DNA from: Neoechinorhynchus agilis | Lineage: Eukaryota; Animalia; Acanthocephala | Assembly: GCA_051530055.1 (NCBI GenBank) | Contig: CM121343.1 | Location: 1,830,389-1,894,388, forward strand | Direction: 5' to 3' | Length of the DNA stretch: 64,000 bases | In this document: piece by piece, positions 14,167-27,845 of the stretch | How positions within the stretch are numbered: position 1 is the first letter of the stretch | How the letters are laid out: the number at the start of each line of letters is the position of its first letter | Position numbers and translations under genes: made by a program | The notes under the pieces: model-generated | What the model was told of the DNA's origin: nothing | Seen by the model: the letters and a program-made list of their open reading frames with translations, nothing else | Databases searched by the model: none

Positions 14167-16087
14167 CTAATTTTTCTCTAGAATGTTTGAGTGATTATTG
14201 ACATCCACCAATAATAGAACTTGTTTCACCCAGTGGGAAACTTCATTTTGACCCGAAGATGAAGACGAGTATAGAATTGCGAACGGAGATCGCTTTAGAA
14301 GAAAAACAAAGTCTTAAATCAGATAAAGAAAAAGCTCACCAGAAGACTCAAAAGATCCTTTCTCTCGCTTGCTTTACGTTTTAGACTGAAAAAGGGGTAA
14401 GGACGAGGTATTCCATGATGGAGGAAGACGCAAACCAAGTGTCGACAAAATCGCAAAATTCCGTACTGAAGTTTGAGCGAGGTAGTGTTGGAGGTACACC
14501 TTCAAATATATGCGCCAGTAATTCGAATATTGCCATTGGCTTTTGAGATTCAAAGTCTGAGATGGAAATGAGTGACGAATGTTAGTGAATAATTCGTACC
14601 ATCTCTTCGAATGCTAAGAGGTTCCTGACTCATGACATGTTTAATATATGCGTCGGAAGGGTAGGGAATGGGGTAACACCCTAACGCGAGCTCCACGAGT
14701 GACAGCCCCAAACTCCATATATCTGACTGAACAGTATACCGAGATCCATCCAGTCTTTCTGGAGCCATGTAAGATCTTGTTCCAATGAACGTATTAGCCA
14801 TTGAATCAATCAGTTGACCAGACACACCGAAGTCGCAAAGTTTGATCTCTCCTTCACTATTCACCAATATATTTGACGGTTTCACGTCTGCTAAACGATA
14901 TCGGTACTTAAAGGTTCATAAGAAAATCATCTCGCCACACCTCTATGTATGATCCTATGTTTCTCTCGAAGGTAATTCAACCCTTCCAATACCTATGAAC
15001 GTTTCATGAAGAAAAGAGATCTGTGAATGGATTACTTACGGATGCCGTAACATAGCCCAATATATTTTCAGGTAATCTAGGGACCTTCCTAAGCATTATA
15101 TCTAATGATCCACCGTCCTATAGGAAACAATCATCGTCCATTTGAAGTAGTCCACTCACCATATACTCCATGCACATATGAATTTCCCCGTTGTGAGTGA
15201 ATGCACCATACGAACCAACGATGTAAGGTGAGTTATATGGCACTTTTGTTTTTGAAAGAACCCATACAAAAGTATCCGGGAGTACAAAGATGCAGTACTG
15301 ATAGCTCCCGAATAATCTGCTGGCGAATCAAAGGCTTGACTTCCAAATGGATCATCTAATGCACGTAAATAAGAGATAACCGAGGATCGATCACGAACTA
15401 TAAACCAACCAAAAAAAGCCAATCTTATAACTAAGAAGAGAAAGTTTCTTCGTAGGAATAACGACCAAAAAATCATTTGCGGGTGGAGGGGAGGAAATCA
15501 CGCCACAAAAAAAAACTACAGCCGTGATTCGGAAGAAAGTTTGTATTCAGATCTACACTGTCGCAAAATGTCTTACTGTTGTAAATCTAAATTTGCAAGA
15601 ACTGTCGCGAGTATTCACGGGTGCGTCTCAACCCATTTAACTTCCTTCAACTGACCTTTCGAGCCATTATTTGCCCCGTGGCCCTATGGCTCACTTTCCA
15701 AACAATTCCACTGGTCCCGTGACCCAACTCATAAAGATCATTGAGCGAATCAGCACTAAGTTCCCCGATAGCTTCCTTAGACTTGAAAAAATCGTTCATT
15801 CGAGATCTCTGAATATCGGTACAGTTCATGTGACTGAATTGACGTTGTAGCCAATCGATGCTTTTGTTCGTGGACGCAGCCGCGGCGTACAATCCATTCT
15901 GAAGAAGAGATATTTCCTCGCAAATGGGATCCCTAATAACACTCTAGTTTTGGGATTTCACTCGAAAAACGCCTTACGGCTTTCCTTCGTCTAATCGAAT
16001 TCGATTATCGATGACGTCTTTGTTGGCTCCACCATCTTCGGAGCCAGGTAAGATCAATCCCATTACGTTCTTCCTCCTTCTAGACAT
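14167..16087 (-). CDS. MAP2K1: MEK1/2 MAP kinase kinase, about 10 exons
   Basis: Basic N-terminal D-domain [73 protein letters not shown]. Confidence 0.97.
15235..15283 (-). other. Candidate non-canonical hairpin intron in MEK1 (49 nt)
   Basis: Removal gives VLHL-C-NSPY (cf. VLHECNSPY); stem GG(A)TACTTTTGT/ACAAAAGTGCC. Confidence 0.65.
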
Positions 16088-16270
16088 TAGGATTCGTCGT
16101 GGCCTTTTTTGCGTAAATGCTCTTGCACGGCGTCATGCATTGAAGCAGAAAGAATCGTGTTCCAGATTCAACTGTCGAACTTGAAGCATGACGTCAGTCG
16201 TACGCGCGTATCATTGATCCAGAACGTCTCTTTTGACTTTAAGATCTCAAACGTAGAAACATTCTTGTAG

Positions 16271-19108
16271 ATGAGCTCACTCAGTGATGGTGGAGCGGGT
16301 AATGTTTACATGGAGCGACTCATTCCGCTGGTCAATAAGTTACAGGATGCATTTGCTGGAGTTGGCGCCGGTCGATTCGAGATTGATTTGCCTCAAATCG
16401 CCGTAGTCGGTTCTCAAAGTGCCGGAAAGAGTTCGGTACTTGAGAACTTTGTAGGCCGGGATTTCCTCCCACGTGGATCTGGTATAGTCACTCGGCGTCC
16501 TCTTATTCTTCAGCTTTTGTTTCATCCGAAGGCTGAATTTGGTGAATTTCTGCATTGCCGCGGTCGCAAGTTTACCGACTTTAATCAAATTAGGAAAGAA
16601 ATCGAAGATGAAACCGATCGCCTAACTGGCACTAACAAAGGAATATCTAATATTCCAATCAATCTTCGTATATATTCACCCCATGTCCTTAACCTTACAC
16701 TGGTCGATTTACCCGGACTTACTAAAGTTCCAATCGGCGACCAACCAGCTGATATTGAAGTTCAAATTCGATTGATGATATTGGAATATATTAGTCGTGA
16801 TAACTGCCTTGTTTTAGCAGTAACACCCGCCAATAGCGACCTCGCGAATTCTGACGCTCTCAAGTTAGCCAAAGAAGTGGATCCAAGTGGAATGAGAACT
16901 ATAGGCGTACTCACTAAACTTGATTTGATGGATGAAGGTACTGATGCTCGGCATATTTTAGAAAACCGATTATTTCCACTCAGACGTGGTTATGTTGGTA
17001 TCGTCAATCGAAGTCAACGTGATATCGACGGCAAAAAAAACCTCCAAGCTGCTTTGGCTAGCGAGCGACAGTTTTTCTTAAGTCACCCTTCCTACCGCCA
17101 CATGAGTGACCGAATGGGCACTGCGCATTTACAACGAGTACTCAACCAACAACTAACTGAACACATCCGGAATTGTTTACCGGTGCTGCGTAAAAAACTT
17201 CAAGATAGTTGCCTCAGCCTTGAGAAGGAAGTGGGCGTTTTTAAGAGTCTAAACCTAAATGATCCAAGTCGAGCTACCAAAACAATGATGACGCTTGTTC
17301 AAGCTACCAAGACTGATTTTGACAGAATCATCAATGGTAGTTCGGCCGCGGAAATATCAACCACTGAGTTAAGCGGAGGTGCCAAAATTAATCGAATATT
17401 TCATGAAAGATACCCATTTGAACTTATAAAGATCCAGTATGACGAAAAGGAACTACGAAAAGCAATCACTTATGCGATCAGGAATTCATTTGGCGTTCGA
17501 CCCGGACTTTTCACACCCGATCAAGCATTTGAGGCTATCGTACGTCATCAATTAGAAAAGCTACTTTCACCATCCTTAAAATGCGTTGATCTTGTCTGTG
17601 CAGAACTCATGAATATAGTTCAAACTGTAACTGAACGAATGGTCGTATATCCCAAATTACGCGATGAAGTTGAACGATTCGTTACTCATTATATAAAAGA
17701 ACAAGAAGAGAAAACAAAAGAGGATATTTCACGATATGTTCAACATCAGTTGTCGTATATTAATACTAATCATGAGGACTTTATCGGATTTGCTAATGCC
17801 GAACGAAAACCTGTCGGTTCACACGGCCGTGCGGCGAGCGGTGACCATAAGAAGGTGGCCGTCCAAATTATTCGTAAAGGGTGGCTCCGTATGCACACCG
17901 GAGCAAGCTTTATCAAAGGTGGAGCCATGGATTTCTTTTTCGTCCTCACCACTGAATCCCTGTCTTGGTATAAGGATCAAGACGAAACCGATAAGAAATA
18001 CATGATTCCTCTTGATGGACTTAGAATTCGGGACGAAGATTCAGGATTCATTTCAAGGCGTGCGAAATTCTCCGTTGTTCATACTGATGGAAGGTAAGAA
18101 CGTCGTAGTTCGCATTTATTCTGATCGCATCCGCTCAGGAATATCTATAAGGAACACAAACAATTGGAGTTGTCGTGTGATGATGTCGAGGAAGTAACTC
18201 ATGCAGTCATCACACTCACTTTTCGATCCATCCCACTTTCGGGAGAAAGGTTTTTCAACCCTTCAGATAAAACATTTTCATGTATTCAGATCGACAGTAC
18301 GCGATCCTTTTAATCGGCCGTGTAGAAAAAGTGTTATAGATATTTTTACGTAATGCTAAATAATCGAGATCCATGAAACCGGGAGGGCGATTTCACCTTA
18401 AAAAAAGATTGATCTTACTTTATACGTTGATGAATGCATCGTATAGACAGTTGGAAGGCATCATTTCTAAGGGCTGGTGTGTATCCGATTCAAAACCCAG
18501 TATACGACGAGAGCGGTCAATCTGGCCGAGGAATTGGCGACGATGGTACTATAGCATCGGTAGATCCGTTTTTGGACAGACAAGTTGAGACGATTCGGAA
18601 CCTTGTTGAATCCTATATGGATATAGTGAACCGCACAACCCGGGACATGATTCCGAAGATTATAATGCATGACTTAATTTTGCAGACGAAGGAGTATATG
18701 GCTCAAGAAACCCTAGCGCATTTGTACGGGCTCGATATCCATGAAATGATGGAGGAGAACCCCGAGGAAGTGGAACGCCGTGATCAGACCTTGAAACTTT
18801 ACAGTGCGACCAAGGACGCACTCACGATAATCCAAGAGATTGTAGCGAATACATCAACTAAAGCGGTGCCTCCTCCTGTAAACACTGACTGGATAAAGAC
18901 GGAAGAGAAATCTGGGACGGTGGCTGCGCCTACACGAGTAGCACCAACACGTCCACCGCCCATGTCCAGTGCACCTCCACCACTACCTAGCAGGAACGCA
19001 TCGCTGCCTCCGCCGCTCATTCCGACAAAATCGCGTGATCAACAACATCTTCATCATCATCATCACGCTGAACCTCAACCGCCGCCATTGCCCGATCGAG
19101 ACTTTTGA
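16271..19108 (+). CDS. DNM: Classical dynamin (GTPase, middle, PH, GED, PRD); exons 16271-18093, ~18139-18195, 18445-19108
   Basis: [17 protein letters not shown] GTPase motifs; [13 protein letters not shown]; proline-rich tail. Confidence 0.98.
18196..18444 (+). other. Candidate non-canonical hairpin intron in dynamin (249 nt)
   Basis: Removal gives DVEE-V-DSWKASF; terminal inverted repeat ATGCAGTCATCA/TGATGAATGCAT. Confidence 0.75.
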
Positions 19109-19140
19109 TACCAAAAAGTGTTTTTTTCATCATTGATTCG

Positions 19141-22100
19141 CTACCAATTCGCGTCTTTTACAATTCCACCAGCTGCAGCCAAGTGGCTATCCTTCATGAG
19201 GTACAAATCAACCTCACGGGCGACTCGACGTCCGTCAGCGATCGCATGCACAATCGCCGAAGCGCCGTGGCGACAGTCACCACAGGCGAACAAATTCCGA
19301 ATTTTGATGCCATTCTGTTTTGGGTTCACTACATCTCTTAGTACTCCTCGAAGTGGGTTAGAATCTTCGCCATTTTGATGACTCTGGGTGCAAATGAACA
19401 CCATGTCACATGGAAGCTCAATGTCAACGCCGCCATTTTTAGAATCCACAGCAATGACTCCAAGGACGCGCCCGGTGTTGTCCCCGATAATCTCCCTAAC
19501 TTCAGACACGTTCAACAACACATCCTTTTCCGATAATATTGCAGCCTCCTCACATGCAGTTGCCAACTCAGCCTTCTGCGCCCATGAAACTGATGGTGCA
19601 TCAACGGTCCCCGATTGAACAATAACACATTTAATCCAGCTAATCTTTTCCCTTACGAGAACCATTATGCAATCAGCCAGCGACGATGCATACTTTGCTT
19701 CGCTGATCACTACTACTCTCTTTCCCATTACCTTAGGCCGATCTTCGTACTTGGAGTTGCAACCACTTGTTGATACTCTCAGATGATTAGCCAGAAAACC
19801 CGGCGCAGTAAATACGTTGTCCAAATACCGACCTTTTATCACTAACTCTTCTGGATCATCCGATCCGAGGGCCAAAATAACGGCCGACGATGAAGTCAAG
19901 AGATTGTTGAAATGATTTAGAGTGACTTCGTAGTTTACCAAAAATGTGATTCCTTCCTTTCTCAAGATGTCCACACGTCGCTCAATCACCTAATCGCAGA
20001 ACTAAGAAGTCTCACTCATGACAAACGAAGAAATACCTTCGGACTTAATCGAGTTGGTAGAATTCCGAACCGCAACAAACCACCCACATTTTCATTCTTG
20101 TCATAGACGTAAACGGAATGACCTGCTTTGTTTAACTGAGCAGCAGCAGCAAGACCTGCAGGTCCAGAGCCAATGATCGTAACCCGATGCCCCGTTCTAT
20201 GAGGAGGGACCTCTGGTACGATGTACCCTTTTTCGAATCCATATTCGGCTATCATAAGTTCAATGTTCCGTATTGTAACTGGATCCGGTTGGAATACACA
20301 CGCAGTTTCACACGTTGCAGGGCATACCCTTCCCGTAAACTCGGGGAAATTATTACTTTGCAAGATCCTATGAAGTGCACTTCGGTAATCGTTATCAGTC
20401 ACTAATTTTGTAAAATCCGGAATGACCACCCCAAGTGGGCAGCCCGATTCTGACGATTGACAAAATGGTACCCCACAATTTATACACCTCGAAGCTTGAC
20501 ATTTAACCAGAGTTTCCAGGGACTTCATATCCAGAACCTCTTCGAGATCGTTCATCCTCTCCTTCACGTTTCTACACACCACAGCTTGGCGTTCATATAT
20601 CATAAAACCACGGTGCTTTAATGTGGATCCAGTATCCTCCAAATCAGGACACAACTCATACTCATCTCCCTTTGCACTCTTCTCCGAAAATTCTTCAATT
20701 GTATTTGACATTTGAGCACTAATTCCAGCAGGTGTAGAATTCATCAATGCCGCTTTGTGGCGTTCACTGTCGTGAGACAATATCTTTTATTTCATCGGCG
20801 TGAATCTTCGTTCGAGTACATTTTACTAACCTTAACAAACTTTTTACACGAATTGTCGAAATCATCGAGCAGAGCTTGGGCAACGCAACTACCAGTCAAC
20901 TTTGCGAAATCTTCTAGAATCCCACGCAATTGCTTCTTTGATTTATAACTTTCAATTATGGATTCGGTGTGCAAATTAGCCATATTACAACGCGAAAGTA
21001 CCATCTCTTCATTCTCATCAACCTTCAAAACGTCTCGTATGGCTGCTGAACTATAGACAGATTTTATGTGTGTGTGTAAAACCATACATTTTAATTTAGA
21101 GAATTCCAATTATTTTACGATCGATCGTTCGCACACACTACAGAAACATGGCTTTAAAAGATCAAACTGATCAGTGCTTTAGATTTTCAATTTCTTCCCT
21201 GATGACACAATGCATCCCCCTTATTTGCTTTAGGTTTAAAAAAGAATAAACGTGCAATGAATACAAAGATATGGGCTCCTAAGCATACAGAAATCGTGGC
21301 TTTGGTGTGCAAAAGTTCTCCCGTAAAATCCATAGCTTCGATTGTCGATATGTGAGGTACCGGGGGTGGGGAATTGACTAAATTTGTTGTCTTGGTCTTC
21401 ACTTGGTACAGAACGTTTTATTAAAGGTGTTTCTAACCTCTTCGGATTCATTATCACTTAATGCCGGAATCTGAAGATGAGATTGGCCGAGCGTCGACCT
21501 GCAAAGCACAATCAATTGAGGAAGGTGTCAAAGCCACCGAGAAATGTTGTTATCATTATAATATCCGGAATGACATACCCGACCGTACAGTGGCCTAAAC
21601 AAGTAAAACGTTTTATTTTAGAGAATTATATTGATTCATTATCTGTTGCCATGGCCCAAAATGAATCGGAGGAAAGGCGTAACCTCACAAATTCTCCTGC
21701 GAACAATAACTACCAACTTTCCCACGAAATCCACTCCAAAATAAACAAACACATTCAAGGAACTTCTCAGAACTCGAGTATTCATGGGGACCCAGGGGTA
21801 AATGGTTCCTCTACTTTGAACAATAAGACGTTAATGACAGCAGCGTTGAACAAACTGACCACTCAATCAATCTATGATTATAGCACCTGAGCACGATAAC
21901 GTTAGGCGATAAATTAAAAAAGACTTGAACGACCAACGAGGTTGATTCAAAAAAAGAGCAACGACTAACTAAATGCAGTTCTGAATGGTCAAGATCCACA
22001 CATGCCATGGACGATCAATAGCGAGAAGTATACTAAAACACTTAAAAAACTGACGATGAACCCTAAGAGGTTTGAAACGCCTTTAGTAAAACATTCTCTA

Positions 22101-25100
22101 CCAAGCGAAGACCGAAACAATAAATCTAAGTTAGATTGTAGTTTACGGCGCCAGAGTTTTTTTAAATTATTATCTAAAGTGAAGAATGCAAAACACAAGC
22201 ATAACTGCATGTTCTCAGCTTCGAGAGCAGCAATCATAGCCCCAAAGTCAGCAGCCATCACCTTAAATCACACCGCCAGCCATTCCAGCAGCAAAATTTC
22301 TGCCAACTTTACCAAGAATGACCGCTATACCAGAGGTCATATATTCGCAACCATGGTCACCGCATCCCTAGATGAGTATAGATAATATATCGGTTAAAAT
22401 GAAGGAAAATCGCTAACCTCACAAACTGCAACTGCTCCCGAGTTGCGAACGCAGAATCGTTCACCTACCATGCCACTGAAGTAGGCACACCCACTTATGG
22501 CACCGTACAACAATACGTTGCCGGCAATAATATTTTCATTAGATTTAAAAGTCGAGCTTAAGGGTGGTCGGACAACTATTTTGCCACCCGATAGACCTTT
22601 GCCGGCGAAATCGTTCACTTCACCGTATATCGTAAAAGTAATTCCTTTTGCCAAAAACGCACCAAAGCTCTGTCCACCGGTGCCTTCGAGGTGTATGTTG
22701 ATTGAGTTATCCGCCAGCTTAGAATCCAATCCCAATCCGACGATATATCCGCTAATCAAAGCACCAAATGATCTGTCGGTGTTCTTGATTTTCAAACTAA
22801 AATTACAATTTGTGGAACGTCCTTTTGACTGAAGCAGTTCGGTTTTTATCCTATCAAGCAGCGTGTATTCCTATCCGATAATCACTTTTGTTTAATAGTA
22901 TTTAAAGAGCATGTACGTACCAATCGATCCTTCACGTTGAATTTAGCTGGTGTTTGTGGAGGTAAGGTCGAAACCGGTGGCGGATTCAGAAAAAACGAGA
23001 AGTCGAGATGTAATGCTTTGTTACTGAGAGCAGGATTCAGGCGAAGTAAATCCGTTCTTCCAATTAAGTCAGAAAAGAATTTGACCCCAAGAGAGCACAT
23101 TATTTGTCGAACCTAAGAAATGAAATATGATCAACTTCCAATTCATATCCCAACTACAAGCGGATCCGCTTCATGGATCACACCAAGTATAAGTTTGGAG
23201 CGTGAAACACTTCGTAGAACTACGATTTATCACTCATGGCATTAAGCCATTTTTGTGCTGAACAACTGCTACAGTTAAGTTGCAAATAAATTTGCATCGA
23301 TATCTAATTTAGTAGCCGAACATTAATATTGCACTCGCAAAAGATATACTACCCTCAAGGGAAGATCTTTAACGTGTCATTAGATTTCAAAATAGCTTAC
23401 GTCGAAATAACGGCCTTGGATGTAATTTTATGTTAGAAGTACACATGAACTCTCATAAACTATAAATGGGTGCATCGCGCCCTCCGTACCCATCCAAACG
23501 GGCGGTCCGCTAACTAACCTCATTAGCAACAAAATTAAAGTAATTAATAATAGCATCCTCTTGCCCAGTATACCGTCTTCTCAGTTCTTTGTCCTAATGA
23601 TAAAAGAATCAGATTTTTTGATCCATGGACAAACAAAGACTTACTTGGGTTGCTATTCCTACATGGCAAGTATTAAGATGGCATTTCTTGCACATTGTGC
23701 AACCGATCGCTATCATAACGCAAGTCCCAAAGCTAAACTTATCAGCGCCCAATAACGCTGCCTTCACAACATCCACCCCAGTCTGCAGTTGTCCGTCAAC
23801 CTCTAGAGATACTTTGTCTCTAATATTATTCGTTACAAACACTCTATGAGTTTCATTGATACCAAACTCCCATGGAAGACCGGCATTCCGAATGCCCGTC
23901 CAGGCACTACCGCCGGTTCCACCACCATGTCCGGATATTGTTACTGAATTAATACCACTCTTGACTCCGCCAGTGGCAATCACTCCAACACCATGGGAAG
24001 AAACGAGTTTCAGTCCTATGGAGGCATCTGGGTTGACACTGCGAAGGTCGTATACTAGTTGCGAGAGATCTTCTACGCTGTAGACATCGTGATGAGGAGC
24101 CGGACTACGATCGGCAACCCAACTTGTACAATTTCTTGTTTTTGCAACTACCTCGTCCATCTTAAACCAAGGAAGCTCGCCACCCTCACCAGGCTTCGAA
24201 CCTTGCCCAATTTTTATCTGCAATTCAGCAGCCTCGGAAATATACTGTAGTGAAACACCAAATCGGCCAGAGGCAACTTGCTTAATGTACGAAGAATACC
24301 CTGTCGCTGGTTGACCGCCTTCACCACAATTACTTTTCGCGTTAAGTTTGGCCATAGCTCTACCTATTGTATTGAAAGCTTCAATGGACACGGAACCGAA
24401 ACTTATAGCAGCTGATGAAAAACGGCTTAAAATGCTTTCCACGTCTTCAACTTCATCCAAAGTTAGCGGTTTTTTATCTTTCGACGGAAACGCAAAATCC
24501 AACTGACCTGAAAGCGTGCAGCAACGCGAAAGTTCAGAATGAAACTTTGAAAATTCGTTGTAAGCAGCAGAATCATTTTGTCGAACCGCCTTTTGCAAGA
24601 GCCTTATAGCCTTAGGAGCGTATAAGTGATACTCACCACCGTCTCTCCAATTAAACAAGCCATAATTCTGGGCAAATCGGATATCACCGACACGATCAGA
24701 GTAGGCCAATGTGTGTCTGTGCAATACCTCTGATGCGAGCAGCTCGTAGGATACGCCACCCAAACGAGAAGTCGTACCGCTAAAGCATTGTTCTACAACA
24801 TCATCAGCTAAACCAACAATTTCAAAACTCTGAGCACCCTTATAGCTTTGTAGGGTAGATATTCCCATTTTTGCAAGTATATGGAATATTCCTTGGATAC
24901 AAGTAAATCGATATCGATCAAAATGCTTGTCGGACGTATTCTCATAAGAGCTGGGAAAAACGCCCATTCGACGATATTGAGCTATTAAGTCGAAAACCAT
25001 GTATGGGCAGATTGCATCAGCACCAAAGCTCAATAGAACCGCCATTTGATGAACATCTCGAGCTTCACCTGATTCGACAAAGAGACTACATTTCATCCTG

Positions 25101-27845
25101 CTCTTTTCGTTCACGAGAAATTGATGAACCGCTCCCACTGTTAACAATGCACTCACTGGTACACTACCAGGACCCACGCAACGGTCAGACAGTATAATCA
25201 TATTGTAACCTTGGTTCACTGCTTCAAGACATTCCTTGCATATTATAGGAAGAGTATCACGAAGTCCGTTGCTTCCCGATTGTCTGCTAAAGAGCATATT
25301 TATAACTTTTGAACGAAGACCATGATGTGCACTAAGTTTTATGACCTCGAGCTCTATCGGAGATAAAATTGGGGAATCGAGCCACAATCTTCTACATTGC
25401 TCACTCGACGGATTTAATAAATCGTGTTCCGGACCAATGGGGCATCCAAGCGACATGACAATACGTTCGCGAATCGAATCCAAAGGTGGATTAGTCCCCT
25501 GGGCAAACTTTTGTTGAAAATAATCGTATGAAAGACGACTGCACTGTGAGAGACAAGCTAAAGGAGTATCATCTCCCATCGATGCTGTTGCTTCGCGCGT
25601 GTCGCGAATCATTGGCAATAGAACTTCATTAAAACTTTCGGTATTATACGCGAAAAGTATCAAACGTCGATCTGTCTCTTTAAACTCACTTACGACACGG
25701 AGATCCTTTCGAGGTTCCTTCTGATGTTTACCATTACCACTGCGCGACCCATCGTCAACACCGGTGATTGGGGATGGAGGTTGTTCGAAAATGCCAGTGT
25801 CACTCAAATGACCAGGTAATAGGTGCTTTTCCAATTTTTCGCGCAGTGTTTTCAATGTAATTGCTCGTGAAAGATACGCTTCGGTTTGAACATCCTTGCA
25901 CATCGCGATTTTCAACTCGTCATTCAGAATCAGTTTACGAGATTGTAGATCAACCATAATCATTTGACCAGATCCTAATTTTCCTTTACACGTAACAGCG
26001 CTTTCGTCCACATCCACAAGTCCAGCTTCATTTGCAACAAACAGCATTCGCTCGTTCCTATCGTCCACCACTTTAAATCTGACTGGTCGTAAACCGTTCC
26101 GATCAACGAGACTACCACAAATCCTGCCATCCGTAAACATCACTGCAGCTGGACCGTCCCAAGGTTCCATAGCGAAACTATTGTATCTAACATACCTAGC
26201 GATCCGCGCCTTATCTGAGTCTCCAGTTGGAATCAGATCATCGGTGCCCAGAAATCCCTCCGGAATAAGTAGGAATAGCGTTTCGGCTAAATTTTTTCTA
26301 CCGGCTTTGTGAATGAACTCAGCAGCATTGTCCAAAAGGCTCGTATCGGATACTTCGCCCATATTGCTCTCCAGAATGGGGTAAATATCGGACATATGTT
26401 TGAATCGATCGCTGGCCAACATTCCTTCCCTGCTGCGCATATGATTGCAGTTTCCTCGTAAGGTATTGATTTCTCCATTGTGAGCCATGACACGGAAAGG
26501 TTGAGCCAACTCCCATGTCGGGTATGTGTTTGTAGCGAACCGAGCATGGACGATCGCGAATGGACTGACAAATTCAGGAGACTCCAAATCAATGTAATAG
26601 TGCCAAAGTTGATTTGCATCGAAGCGGCCCTTATGGAAGAGAAAAGTAAGAATTACTTATTAAAATTGCTTTAGTAAACCTTGTAAACAATGGTTCTGGT
26701 CGATAGGCTACAAATGTAGAATCTATTAGTAGCTTTTATAATTTCATCTGAACTTCTTTTACGTAGTATAAGCACCTTTTTGGTCGTATTGATGCGATTA
26801 GAGGTTAATTGGAGTATAAAATAAGCTTACCTGTCTTTCTAAGTAAAGGTCAGATTTGGACAAAATCAAGAAGGCCTAAAACGAATTTTAGTTTGTGAAC
26901 GTTAAAATAATAAAATATGTTTGAACATTGAATTGTTTATAAACTGTGGTTGTTTTGTGGCGAATGATTGATTTTATTTTAAAATCAAGCACAAGATTGT
27001 GTGGTTCCGAAACCAATTGGATTCAATAAATGAAATCATTTTAATTTCTTCGCCAAAAAACCGACTAATAATAAAATAATTTAAATCAGGCATTGGGAAT
27101 GATGAGTGGAGAATTAGGCAACCACTGCTGAGCATTTTGGGCAAGAGCTATTATAAAATATTCAAGTGGTTATGGACATTTGACAACAGAATTTCTTAGT
27201 GAACTCTCATTCTCGATGAGTAATGGAAAAGTCTACGAAAACGTCTAGATACGCGAAAGCCTTACTTGAAGAATATACGGTTCATCCTGACGCGCTCCAA
27301 CTCCAATTGCATCGTGATTGACGGGGACAACTCGCCAACATATCACCTATGAACCACATGAAAGGTTCATTAGAAAATATCGATACACATACGGTCACGA
27401 AATGTTCGGACGCTATTTCGTTAAATCGTTGCTTACAATATTCGGCATTGGCTGCAGTCATAAAGAACAATCCGGTTGCATATTCCCCGAAGGTGGGAAG
27501 ATCTACCGAATAACTCCTCCTAAAAACATTGAAATATTACACTAAAACGATCAAAAAGAACCTCAAAAGCGATCTGTACATTGCATCGGGAATTCTCAAC
27601 AGGATACCAGCACCGTCGCCCGAATTTCGGATACATGCTCCTCTGTGAGCCATGCCCAAAAGCATGGATTTTGCGTGTAAAATCACCTAAGTACCAATGT
27701 GTTAAACAAATATTCGGACCAACATTCAAACCTTGCGAGACGCAATACAATCTACGCTAACGACCATACCAACTCCACACTGCCCCCGCTGCAGTCGCGT
27801 ACCAGGAAGTGGACCGATTTCAGTCAATTCTTCTTTAAAACTCAT
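19141..27845 (-). CDS. GLT1: Glutamate synthase (fused alpha+beta, eukaryotic NADH-GOGAT type), about 13 exons
   Basis: [55 protein letters not shown] domain, C..CG.PFC...[13 protein letters not shown]. Confidence 0.96.
21034..22264 (-). other. Candidate non-canonical hairpin intron in glutamate synthase (1231 nt)
   Basis: Removal gives GMAGGVI-Y-VL (cf. GMSGGIAYVL) instead of in-frame TAA; perfect 11 bp terminal inverted repeat ATGGCTGCTGA. Confidence 0.7.
21375..22135. mobile_element. Two inverted ~85 bp Penelope-type ends with degenerate hammerhead motifs (21375-21458, 22050-22135) flanking a LINE fragment
   Basis: CTGACGA-TGAACC-CTAAGA-GGTTT-GAAAC; about 75% identical inverted copy; same family as 43.0 kb. 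Confidence 0.7.

Follow-up and report, generated by a model that had tools for sequence, protein, structure and literature searches.

A young interruption in the dynamin gene of Neoechinorhynchus agilis and a candidate 7-nt microexon for its removal

Dynamin is an essential gene, and in the acanthocephalan Neoechinorhynchus agilis its coding sequence carries an interruption within the part that encodes the PH domain. The interruption lies in a 64,000-nt stretch of contig CM121343.1 (assembly GCA_051530055.1), hereafter the window, whose position 1 is base 1,830,389 of the contig and whose coordinates are used throughout; it corresponds to 1,848,582-1,848,834 of the contig, and the locus as fetched is identical to the letters of the window. 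To judge from the sequence, the reading we tentatively favor, at a probability of roughly 0.42, is that two GT-AG introns of 96 and 150 nt flank a 7-nt microexon, giving an mRNA that would encode EEIDNSW. It is safe to conclude that the interruption is real, young and lineage-specific, that it must leave in frame, and that one canonical intron would add at least 19 residues.

An interruption with mismatched phases

The coding sequence is broken at 18194-18446, where exon 2 runs into GTAACT... and, 253 nt later, ...CGTATAG is followed by ACAGTTGGAAGGCA. With a whole codon before it, the GT at 18194-95 is in phase 0. At the other end, only one AG, at 18445-46, follows the in-frame stops (18428-33) before the Ser codon (18449) is reached, and the exon would resume with AC AGT TGG in phase 1. 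An initial annotation, made from the letters alone, had drawn attention to this mismatch of phases and had assigned the region to a dynamin PH domain, and both statements are upheld: removal of 18194-18446 as a GT-AG intron takes out 253 nt, shifts the frame and leads to a stop at 18467 (predicted junction string GTCGAGGAAACAGTTGGAAG), and a PH domain is among the ordered Pfam matches, with 34-45 bits depending on the splicing model. The further proposal that removal of 249 nt restores the conserved EEVDSW also proved correct. Starting at 18195, 18196 or 18197, such a removal yields GAA GTA GAC AGT (EEVDSW); starting at 18194, with GT..GT borders, it yields EEIDSW. Single GT-AG and GC-AG introns were enumerated, and every one that preserves CDDVEE as well as SWKASF brings in 19 or more additional residues.

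The closest available orthologue, from the nearest sequenced relative Pomphorhynchus laevis, encodes the EEADSW region (RNIYREHKTIELSCDEVEEADSWKASF...) in one exon (positions 23705-23851 of the P. laevis locus L002), and in 237 of 237 other dynamins examined the NVYK motif and the Trp are the same distance apart. Because the P. laevis exon is unbroken and the other dynamins share the same spacing, the interruption is a lineage-specific gain. The N. agilis exon downstream of the interruption is 84% identical to P. laevis over the PH helix and 71% over the GED. Given this 71-84% identity, the frame must hold in the mRNA and the gene is no decayed pseudogene. The initial annotation had likewise regarded pseudogenization as unlikely, a view that the conservation of this exon, in a consensus drawn from ~50 worms, bears out.

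Evidence for a proposed 7-nt microexon

In the favored reading, ~249 nt of foreign or filler DNA would have been inserted, in the line leading to N. agilis, into the Val/Ile codon of the EE-V-DSW motif, with which the C-terminal helix of the PH domain begins. The ordinary U2-type spliceosome would take the insert out at GT-AG sites, and the gene would thus survive. Segment B (18297-18446) would be one intron, and segment A (18194-18289) most likely a second, its splicing being presumed. The resulting mRNA, GAG GAA ATC GAC AAC AGT TGG, would encode EEIDNSW, with Val replaced by Ile and one Asn added, in an 848-aa protein; if segment A were retained, the product would be the in-frame 880-aa isoform of GenBank. 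The junction strings predicted by the microexon model are GAGGAAATCGACAACAGTTGG and GTCGAGGAAATCGACAACAGTTGGAAG.

Evidence in support of the microexon comes from a direct repeat, in which ATCGACAGT (18290-98) copies the exon start ATAGACAGT (18443-51) at 8 of 9 positions, in frame and 153 nt apart. An in-frame, AG-preceded copy of the exon start at 8/9 arose in 10 of 20,000 shuffles (5e-4), an improbability comparable to that of the inverted repeat discussed below (7e-4). The resemblance can be taken as the mark of a used sequence because nearly every matching base is needed, whether for an Ile/Val-type codon, for an Asp codon or for the GT. The microexon encodes Ile-Asp, residues that are allowed at this position, where V/I/M/L followed by D/E is found in 212 of 212 dynamins. 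From helix geometry, Ile at i-4 from the Trp would keep the helix face of the usual Val at i-3. The GT at 18297, behind the 7-nt exon, is the only 5' site in phase with the AG at 18446 that adds at most one residue. The initial annotation had held that a canonical rescue needs a 7-nt microexon at 18290-96 and adds one residue, which is confirmed, but it overlooked a single in-frame intron, 18297-18446, that costs 33 residues.

Apart from the interruption, 20 introns of the window were mapped; glutamate synthase accounts for ten, a MEK-like kinase for seven and other places for three, and every one is GT-AG. Sixteen are 36-55 nt long, and the rest measure 79, 300, 390 and 406 nt. Their 5' sites are loose (GTAAG, GTTAG, GTACG, GTTT...), their 3' sites are mainly TAG or CAG, and a YTRAY branch motif lies 14-31 nt from the AG in 11 of the 20, as compared with a background of 25%. 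Splice-site matrices built from these introns discriminate poorly, with leave-one-out scores of true sites ranging from -1.2 to 8.7 (5') and from -4.2 to 9.8 (3'). All four splice sites of the microexon model are canonical and score within the true-site range. The 3' site of the first putative intron, TATTCAG ending at 18289, scores 5.6 and falls in the top 3.5% of exonic decoys. For the intron at 18297-18446, the 5' site GTACGC scores 4.2 (GTACG is the 5' site of 2 of the 20 true introns) and the 3' site TATAG scores 3.4. The branch A of TTGAT is at 18430, 16 nt upstream of the AG; 18446 is the first AG after TTGAT and the only 3' end to gain support from a scan for branch motifs.

Several observations weigh against the favored reading. 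Protein searches for the same species gave only the GenBank model and P. laevis, exact look-ups of open reading frames (ORFs) of the window gave nothing, a metagenome scan gave no spliced junction, and the collections searched held no N. agilis transcripts. An extra residue at this place is seen in 0 of 237 other dynamins, and the microexon form loses 7 bits of PH-profile score (36.0 vs 43.3 for removal of 249 nt). The 5' site of segment A, GTAACT, is weak, with a score of 2.6 that is equalled or beaten by 26% of exonic GTs, and the segment is without a strict YTRAY branch motif, as are 9 of the 20 true introns. Segment A is also a stop-free multiple of three, a property that the GenBank model needs and that is superfluous for the microexon model. 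Two-intron in-frame solutions are common by chance, with 25 enumerated from the donor at 18194. Finally, the terminal inverted repeat, found in 2 of 3,000 shuffles, is left as a relic with no functional account.

The GenBank gene model

The 46.2-Mb N. agilis genome was assembled with MaSuRCA from Illumina and Nanopore reads of ~50 pooled worms, its gaps were closed by long reads, and it was annotated by BRAKER2 with RNA-seq (BMC Genomics 2025, PMC12690905); the RNA-seq reads, from 74 libraries, are available as PRJNA1223661, with a Trinity assembly at Zenodo (10.5281/zenodo.17199078). The resulting model of this gene, ACOME3_008931, splices only 18297-18446 and translates the 96-nt segment A, giving 880 aa. 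The 880-aa protein may be all that the gene makes, or it may be an isoform with a retained intron alongside the microexon form; we consider this model less likely than the microexon reading and rank it second. It inserts 32 residues plus Asn (33 extra) between the last PH beta strand and the C-terminal helix, and its junction strings are TATTCAGATCGACAACAGTTGG and TATTCAGATCGACAACAGTTGGAAG, with GAGGAAGTAACTCATG for the unspliced segment A. That this is indeed the annotated structure follows from the gene span of 2838 nt and the 880 residues, which fit only introns of 45 and 150 nt, and is confirmed by the protein sequence.

In its favor, the GenBank model calls for only the two best-supported splice sites, and segment A, at 96 nt, can be read through in triplets with no stop. 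Scored for in-frame codon use, the segment reaches 1.8, higher than any stop-free intron window and equal to the 9th percentile of coding windows; it thus falls between the coding and intron distributions, which makes this test uninformative. While the annotation was made with RNA-seq hints, it is not independent evidence, because a gene finder that is poor at 7-nt exons, or unable to handle them, would pick this model with or without reads. The 33-residue insertion conflicts with a spacing that does not vary among 237 of 237 dynamins, that of P. laevis among them, and the PH profile loses the helix (34.5 vs 43.3 bits), the precomputed match being classed as "weak". Moreover, a GT stands exactly where homology ends, and a good AG stands exactly where homology resumes. 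In the public ACOME3_008931 protein, the 33 extra residues of the PH domain are probably spurious.

An inverted repeat and a possible precise removal

Another explanation is that exactly 249 nt are excised, with the ends drawn together by a 12-bp stem, either as a hairpin intron at the RNA level or through somatic DNA excision of a TA-flanked element. Such precise removal would have the borders TA..TA, AA..AT or AC..TA (EEVDSW) or GT..GT (EEIDSW), with the predicted junction strings GAGGAAGTAGACAGTTGG, GAGGAAATAGACAGTTGG, GTCGAGGAAGTAGACAGTTGGAAG and GTCGAGGAAATAGACAGTTGGAAG, of which GAGGAAGTAGACAGTTGG is also the empty-site DNA. It would return the spacing to its invariant length and recover the consensus Val, and its PH score is 7 bits above that of the microexon form (43.3 vs 36.0). 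The terminal inverted repeat that the initial annotation described is present, with 18201-12 and 18428-39 complementary at 11 of 12 positions. Among dinucleotide shuffles, 2 of 3,000 (7e-4) had an inverted repeat that matched at 11/12 or better and lay no more than 20 nt from each end; the three other long introns of the window have none. The position of the repeat is therefore unusual, but 21 of 400 shuffles had one this good somewhere along the stretch, and the test was defined after the repeat had been seen. An inverted repeat of 8-20 nt combined with short direct repeats at the borders is the architecture of Amoebophrya introners and euglenid introns.

The stem is energetically competitive, with a duplex energy of -11.8 kcal/mol, an ensemble probability of 17% and a cost of 0.7 kcal/mol above the minimum when enforced. 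However, the minimum-energy fold does not contain it, and in energy the region has no advantage over shuffles (z = +0.72). The branch motif TTGAT (18427-18431) lies within the right arm of the inverted repeat, and stem formation would therefore compete with branch-site recognition. The 20 of 20 other introns that are GT-AG, and the lack of a terminal inverted repeat in the three other long ones, also argue against hairpin splicing, since the lineages known to have hairpin introns have thousands of them and an altered splicing machinery. Furthermore, the in-frame, AG-preceded copy of the exon start (10 of 20,000 shuffles) would be pure coincidence if the insert were removed precisely. Taken together, the fold, the uniform GT-AG borders and the rival microexon signature do not bear out the suggestion in the initial annotation that a hairpin defines a non-canonical excision, and we regard precise removal as improbable.

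The arms of the repeat are set within a symmetric pair of TA dinucleotides, each 4 nt outside its arm. The TA..TA bracket a 247-nt insert, which together with one TA makes 249 nt and implies the empty site GAA G-TA-GAC; a 2-nt repeat alone carries little weight. The sequence G-TA...TA-G supplies the outer GT and AG of the insert. The tetranucleotides that separate the TA..TA from the arms (ACTC and CGTA) are non-complementary, unlike transposon termini. The 64-kb window contains no second copy of the insert. Because the 4 nt between TA and arms are unpaired and no second copy was found, a transposon origin is unproven. On the precise-removal reading, held to be improbable, the insert would be a lone introner-like or internal-eliminated-sequence-like (IES-like), TA-flanked element of 247 nt in an essential gene of an animal whose introns are otherwise ordinary GT-AG ones, and hairpin-guided splicing or somatic DNA excision would restore EEVDSW. 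We infer that the inverted repeat and the TA..TA are a scar of the arrival of the DNA, through a foldback or miniature inverted-repeat transposable element (MITE)-like element or through break repair, and not a splicing signal.

Other origins of the insert were considered. Two inverted copies of exon 2 sequence occur within it, at 18334-44 (11 of 11 positions of 18140-50) and at 18207-15 (9 of 9 positions of 18175-83). They hint, weakly, at a "patchwork" origin by templated synthesis in break repair, which was set aside as a longest-match test gave only p ~0.05. Tandem duplication of segment A into segment B was also rejected: the two show no similarity, with 380 of 500 shuffles scoring at least as high. 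A search for a snoRNA or other known RNA in 18050-18550 gave nothing in Rfam above E = 0.86, and the window as a whole held nothing at the gathering score and no tRNA.

A possible 4-nt microexon, a possible disrupted allele and rejected mechanisms

Conserved spacing could also be reached with a smaller exon. In this alternative, an intron at 18194-18245 (52 nt), an exon AAAG (18246-49) and an intron at 18250-18446 (197 nt) would give EEKDSW, with the predicted junction strings GAGGAAAAAGACAGTTGG and GTCGAGGAAAAAGACAGTTGGAAG. All four sites are GT-AG, 249 nt are removed, and 52 nt is the usual size class in this genome. By the standards of this genome the 5' site AAG/GTTTTT is strong, with a score of 6.5 that places it in the top 3.3% of decoys, and the PH-profile score, at 44.6 bits, is the highest of the models, above those for removal of 249 nt (43.3), the 7-nt microexon (36.0) and the GenBank model (34.5). 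However, the model places Lys before the Asp, where 212 of 212 dynamins have V/I/M/L and P. laevis has Ala. The 3' site CGGGAG is poor, with a score of -0.7 that is matched or beaten by 44% of decoys, and no branch motif accompanies it. In addition, small-exon solutions of this kind are frequent by chance, and the copy ATCGACAGT is left unaccounted for. We consider a 4-nt microexon very improbable.

Alternatively, there may be no functional processing at all, the interruption being a disrupted segregating allele or an assembly error, with working dynamin supplied by a second copy of the gene or by an allele that has the empty site. The insertion contains stops and is young, and the assembly, a combination of Illumina and Nanopore data whose gaps were filled with long reads, represents one haplotype only. 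Yet the DNA came from ~50 pooled worms, and the consensus should therefore be the common allele. Both flanking exons are intact and conserved, and no single-base correction at either border, checked by hand, restores the conserved spacing, the best result being EEDSW; a single-base assembly error was rejected for the latter reason. Only one N. agilis dynamin was present among the 120 matches listed, although there may be a more distant paralogue. There is thus only a slim chance that the interruption goes unprocessed.

Four further mechanisms were discarded. Nested (twin) introns giving 249 nt with GT-AG at each step are impossible for all four starts, as worked out by hand. A U12-type intron needs /RTATCCTT and a TCCTTAAC branch, whereas the 5' sequences here are GTAACTCA and GTACGCGA and the stretch has no TCCTTAAC. 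Excision by IRE1 and tRNA ligase, as for HAC1 or XBP1, would use CNGCAG-like motifs that, by eye, lie inside the stem, and would remove 233 nt, out of frame. A bulge-helix-bulge structure was dismissed, also by eye, given that the 4 nt outside the stem are unable to form a central helix.

Gene structure and genomic context

The gene is a classical dynamin, with Dynamin_N, Dynamin_M, PH and GED in order among the precomputed Pfam matches on protein P0241, and its product is 70% identical to the P. laevis dynamin and ~60% identical to arthropod and mollusc dynamins. Its parts and the features of the interruption are listed in Table 1. Across the part that is a single 608-codon exon in N. agilis, the P. 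laevis gene has more than 10 introns. As a whole, the P. laevis gene occupies 30.5 kb with at least 15 introns (L002 3001-33552), as compared with 2.8 kb and two or three introns in N. agilis. Between these two acanthocephalans, dynamin thus differs by massive intron loss and shrinkage; N. agilis has lost nearly all its dynamin introns, and nonetheless gained this interruption, in a segment of invariant length across animals. A histidine run (HLHHHHH) in the proline-rich tail of the N. agilis protein, at about 19050-19070 of the window, is absent from P. laevis.

Table 1. Window coordinates of the N. agilis dynamin gene and of the features of its interruption
Feature	Position	Strand	Remarks
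Dynamin gene	16271..19108	+	2838 nt, ATG to stop
Exon 1	16271..18093	+	single 608-codon ORF; GTPase, middle domain, most of PH domain; exact match to GenBank P0241
Intron 1	18094..18138	+	45 nt, GT-AG (GTAAGA...CTGAT...CTCAG); splits R/NIY; position common to P. laevis
Exon 2	18139..18193	+	ends ...GAT GAT GTC GAG GAA, i.e. after complete GAA codon
Segment A	18194..18289	+	96 nt, GTAACT...TATTCAG; intron (microexon model) or 32 codons (GenBank model); no in-frame stop
Left TA	18195..18196	+	read from the sequence
Inverted repeat, left arm ATGCAGTCATCA	18201..18212	+	
Candidate microexon ATCGACA (Ile-Asp-A)	18290..18296	+	cag/ATCGACA/gtacgc
Segment B	18297..18446	+	150-nt GT-AG intron (GTACGC...TTGAT...TATAG); removed in GenBank and microexon models
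Inverted repeat, right arm TGATGAATGCAT	18428..18439	+	overlaps branch-point motif
Right TA	18444..18445	+	with following G makes AG 18445-46; possible target-site duplication
Last exon	18447..19108	+	starts (A)AC AGT TGG; then GED, proline-rich tail, stop

The window is extremely compact around the gene. Dynamin and the MEK-like kinase are divergent, with start codons 184 nt apart (16087-16271), and dynamin and the next gene are convergent, with stop codons 33 nt apart (19108-19141). In the MEK-like kinase (15243-15290, minus strand), the intron that follows ...RELSVLHL, its boundary placed by eye only, apparently lengthens the usual LHECNSPYIVG motif by two residues. The glutamate synthase of animals is normally one polypeptide. 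At the N. agilis locus (19141-27845, minus strand), GenBank has two genes, of 1465 aa (about 22263-27845) and 616 aa (19141-21085). The ~1.2 kb between them (21086-22262) is unannotated, and plus-strand ORFs lie at 21477-21890 and 22002-22385. The arrangement may reflect a genuine split of the gene, an annotation error or a further insertion.

Comparison with known systems

Introns derived from transposons or other insertions are known as "introners" from Micromonas, Aureococcus and others (reviewed in PMC11282704). The N. agilis interruption resembles them in that new DNA lies in a formerly unbroken exon, with short border repeats (TA..TA) and an inverted repeat near both ends, and, under the favored reading, in that the ordinary spliceosome would remove it. 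Introners form multi-copy families, whereas the N. agilis insert is without a second copy in 64 kb; their repeats extend to the very ends, whereas in N. agilis 4 nt separate each arm from its TA; and cutting at their splice sites brings back the frame, whereas the outer GT-AG here is off by 4 nt and needs a 7-nt exon or read-through. Intron gain by double-strand-break repair with short direct repeats has been reported for Daphnia.

Non-canonical introns with hairpins include the introner elements of Amoebophrya (PMC7789003), the nonconventional introns of euglenids (PMC11282704, PMC12501133) and the AG-AC and AG-AT introns of Fritillaria borealis (PMC11282704, PMC13326754). There are parallels with the N. 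agilis interruption, in which a 12-nt inverted repeat pairs the ends, a 2-nt direct repeat marks the borders, and the borders would be pyrimidine/purine if cut T/A; precise removal would also give back the ancestral coding sequence. One important difference is that genomes with hairpin introns have thousands of them and a modified splicing apparatus, whereas 0 of the 20 other introns in the window are non-canonical. Animal precedents come only from tunicates; were precise hairpin-guided removal to prove true, N. agilis would be the first animal other than a tunicate with such an intron.

Set beside the public annotation of the same locus, ACOME3_008931, the favored reading shares the same 150-nt intron and differs over segment A, which GenBank translates and which we judge less likely to be part of the main product. 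Microexons of 10 nt or fewer occur in animal and plant genes and are usually old and conserved. Like them, the candidate described here would be a 7-nt exon between AG and GT that fits in coding sense and frame and is missed by standard gene finders; unlike them, it would have arisen with a lineage-specific insertion, and it alters an invariant spacing. Dynamin of N. agilis would then offer a clean natural case of how co-opted splice sites and a newly born microexon can make an exonic insertion tolerable, at a site that keeps possible scars of its origin in the TA..TA, the inverted repeat and the copies of flanking sequence.

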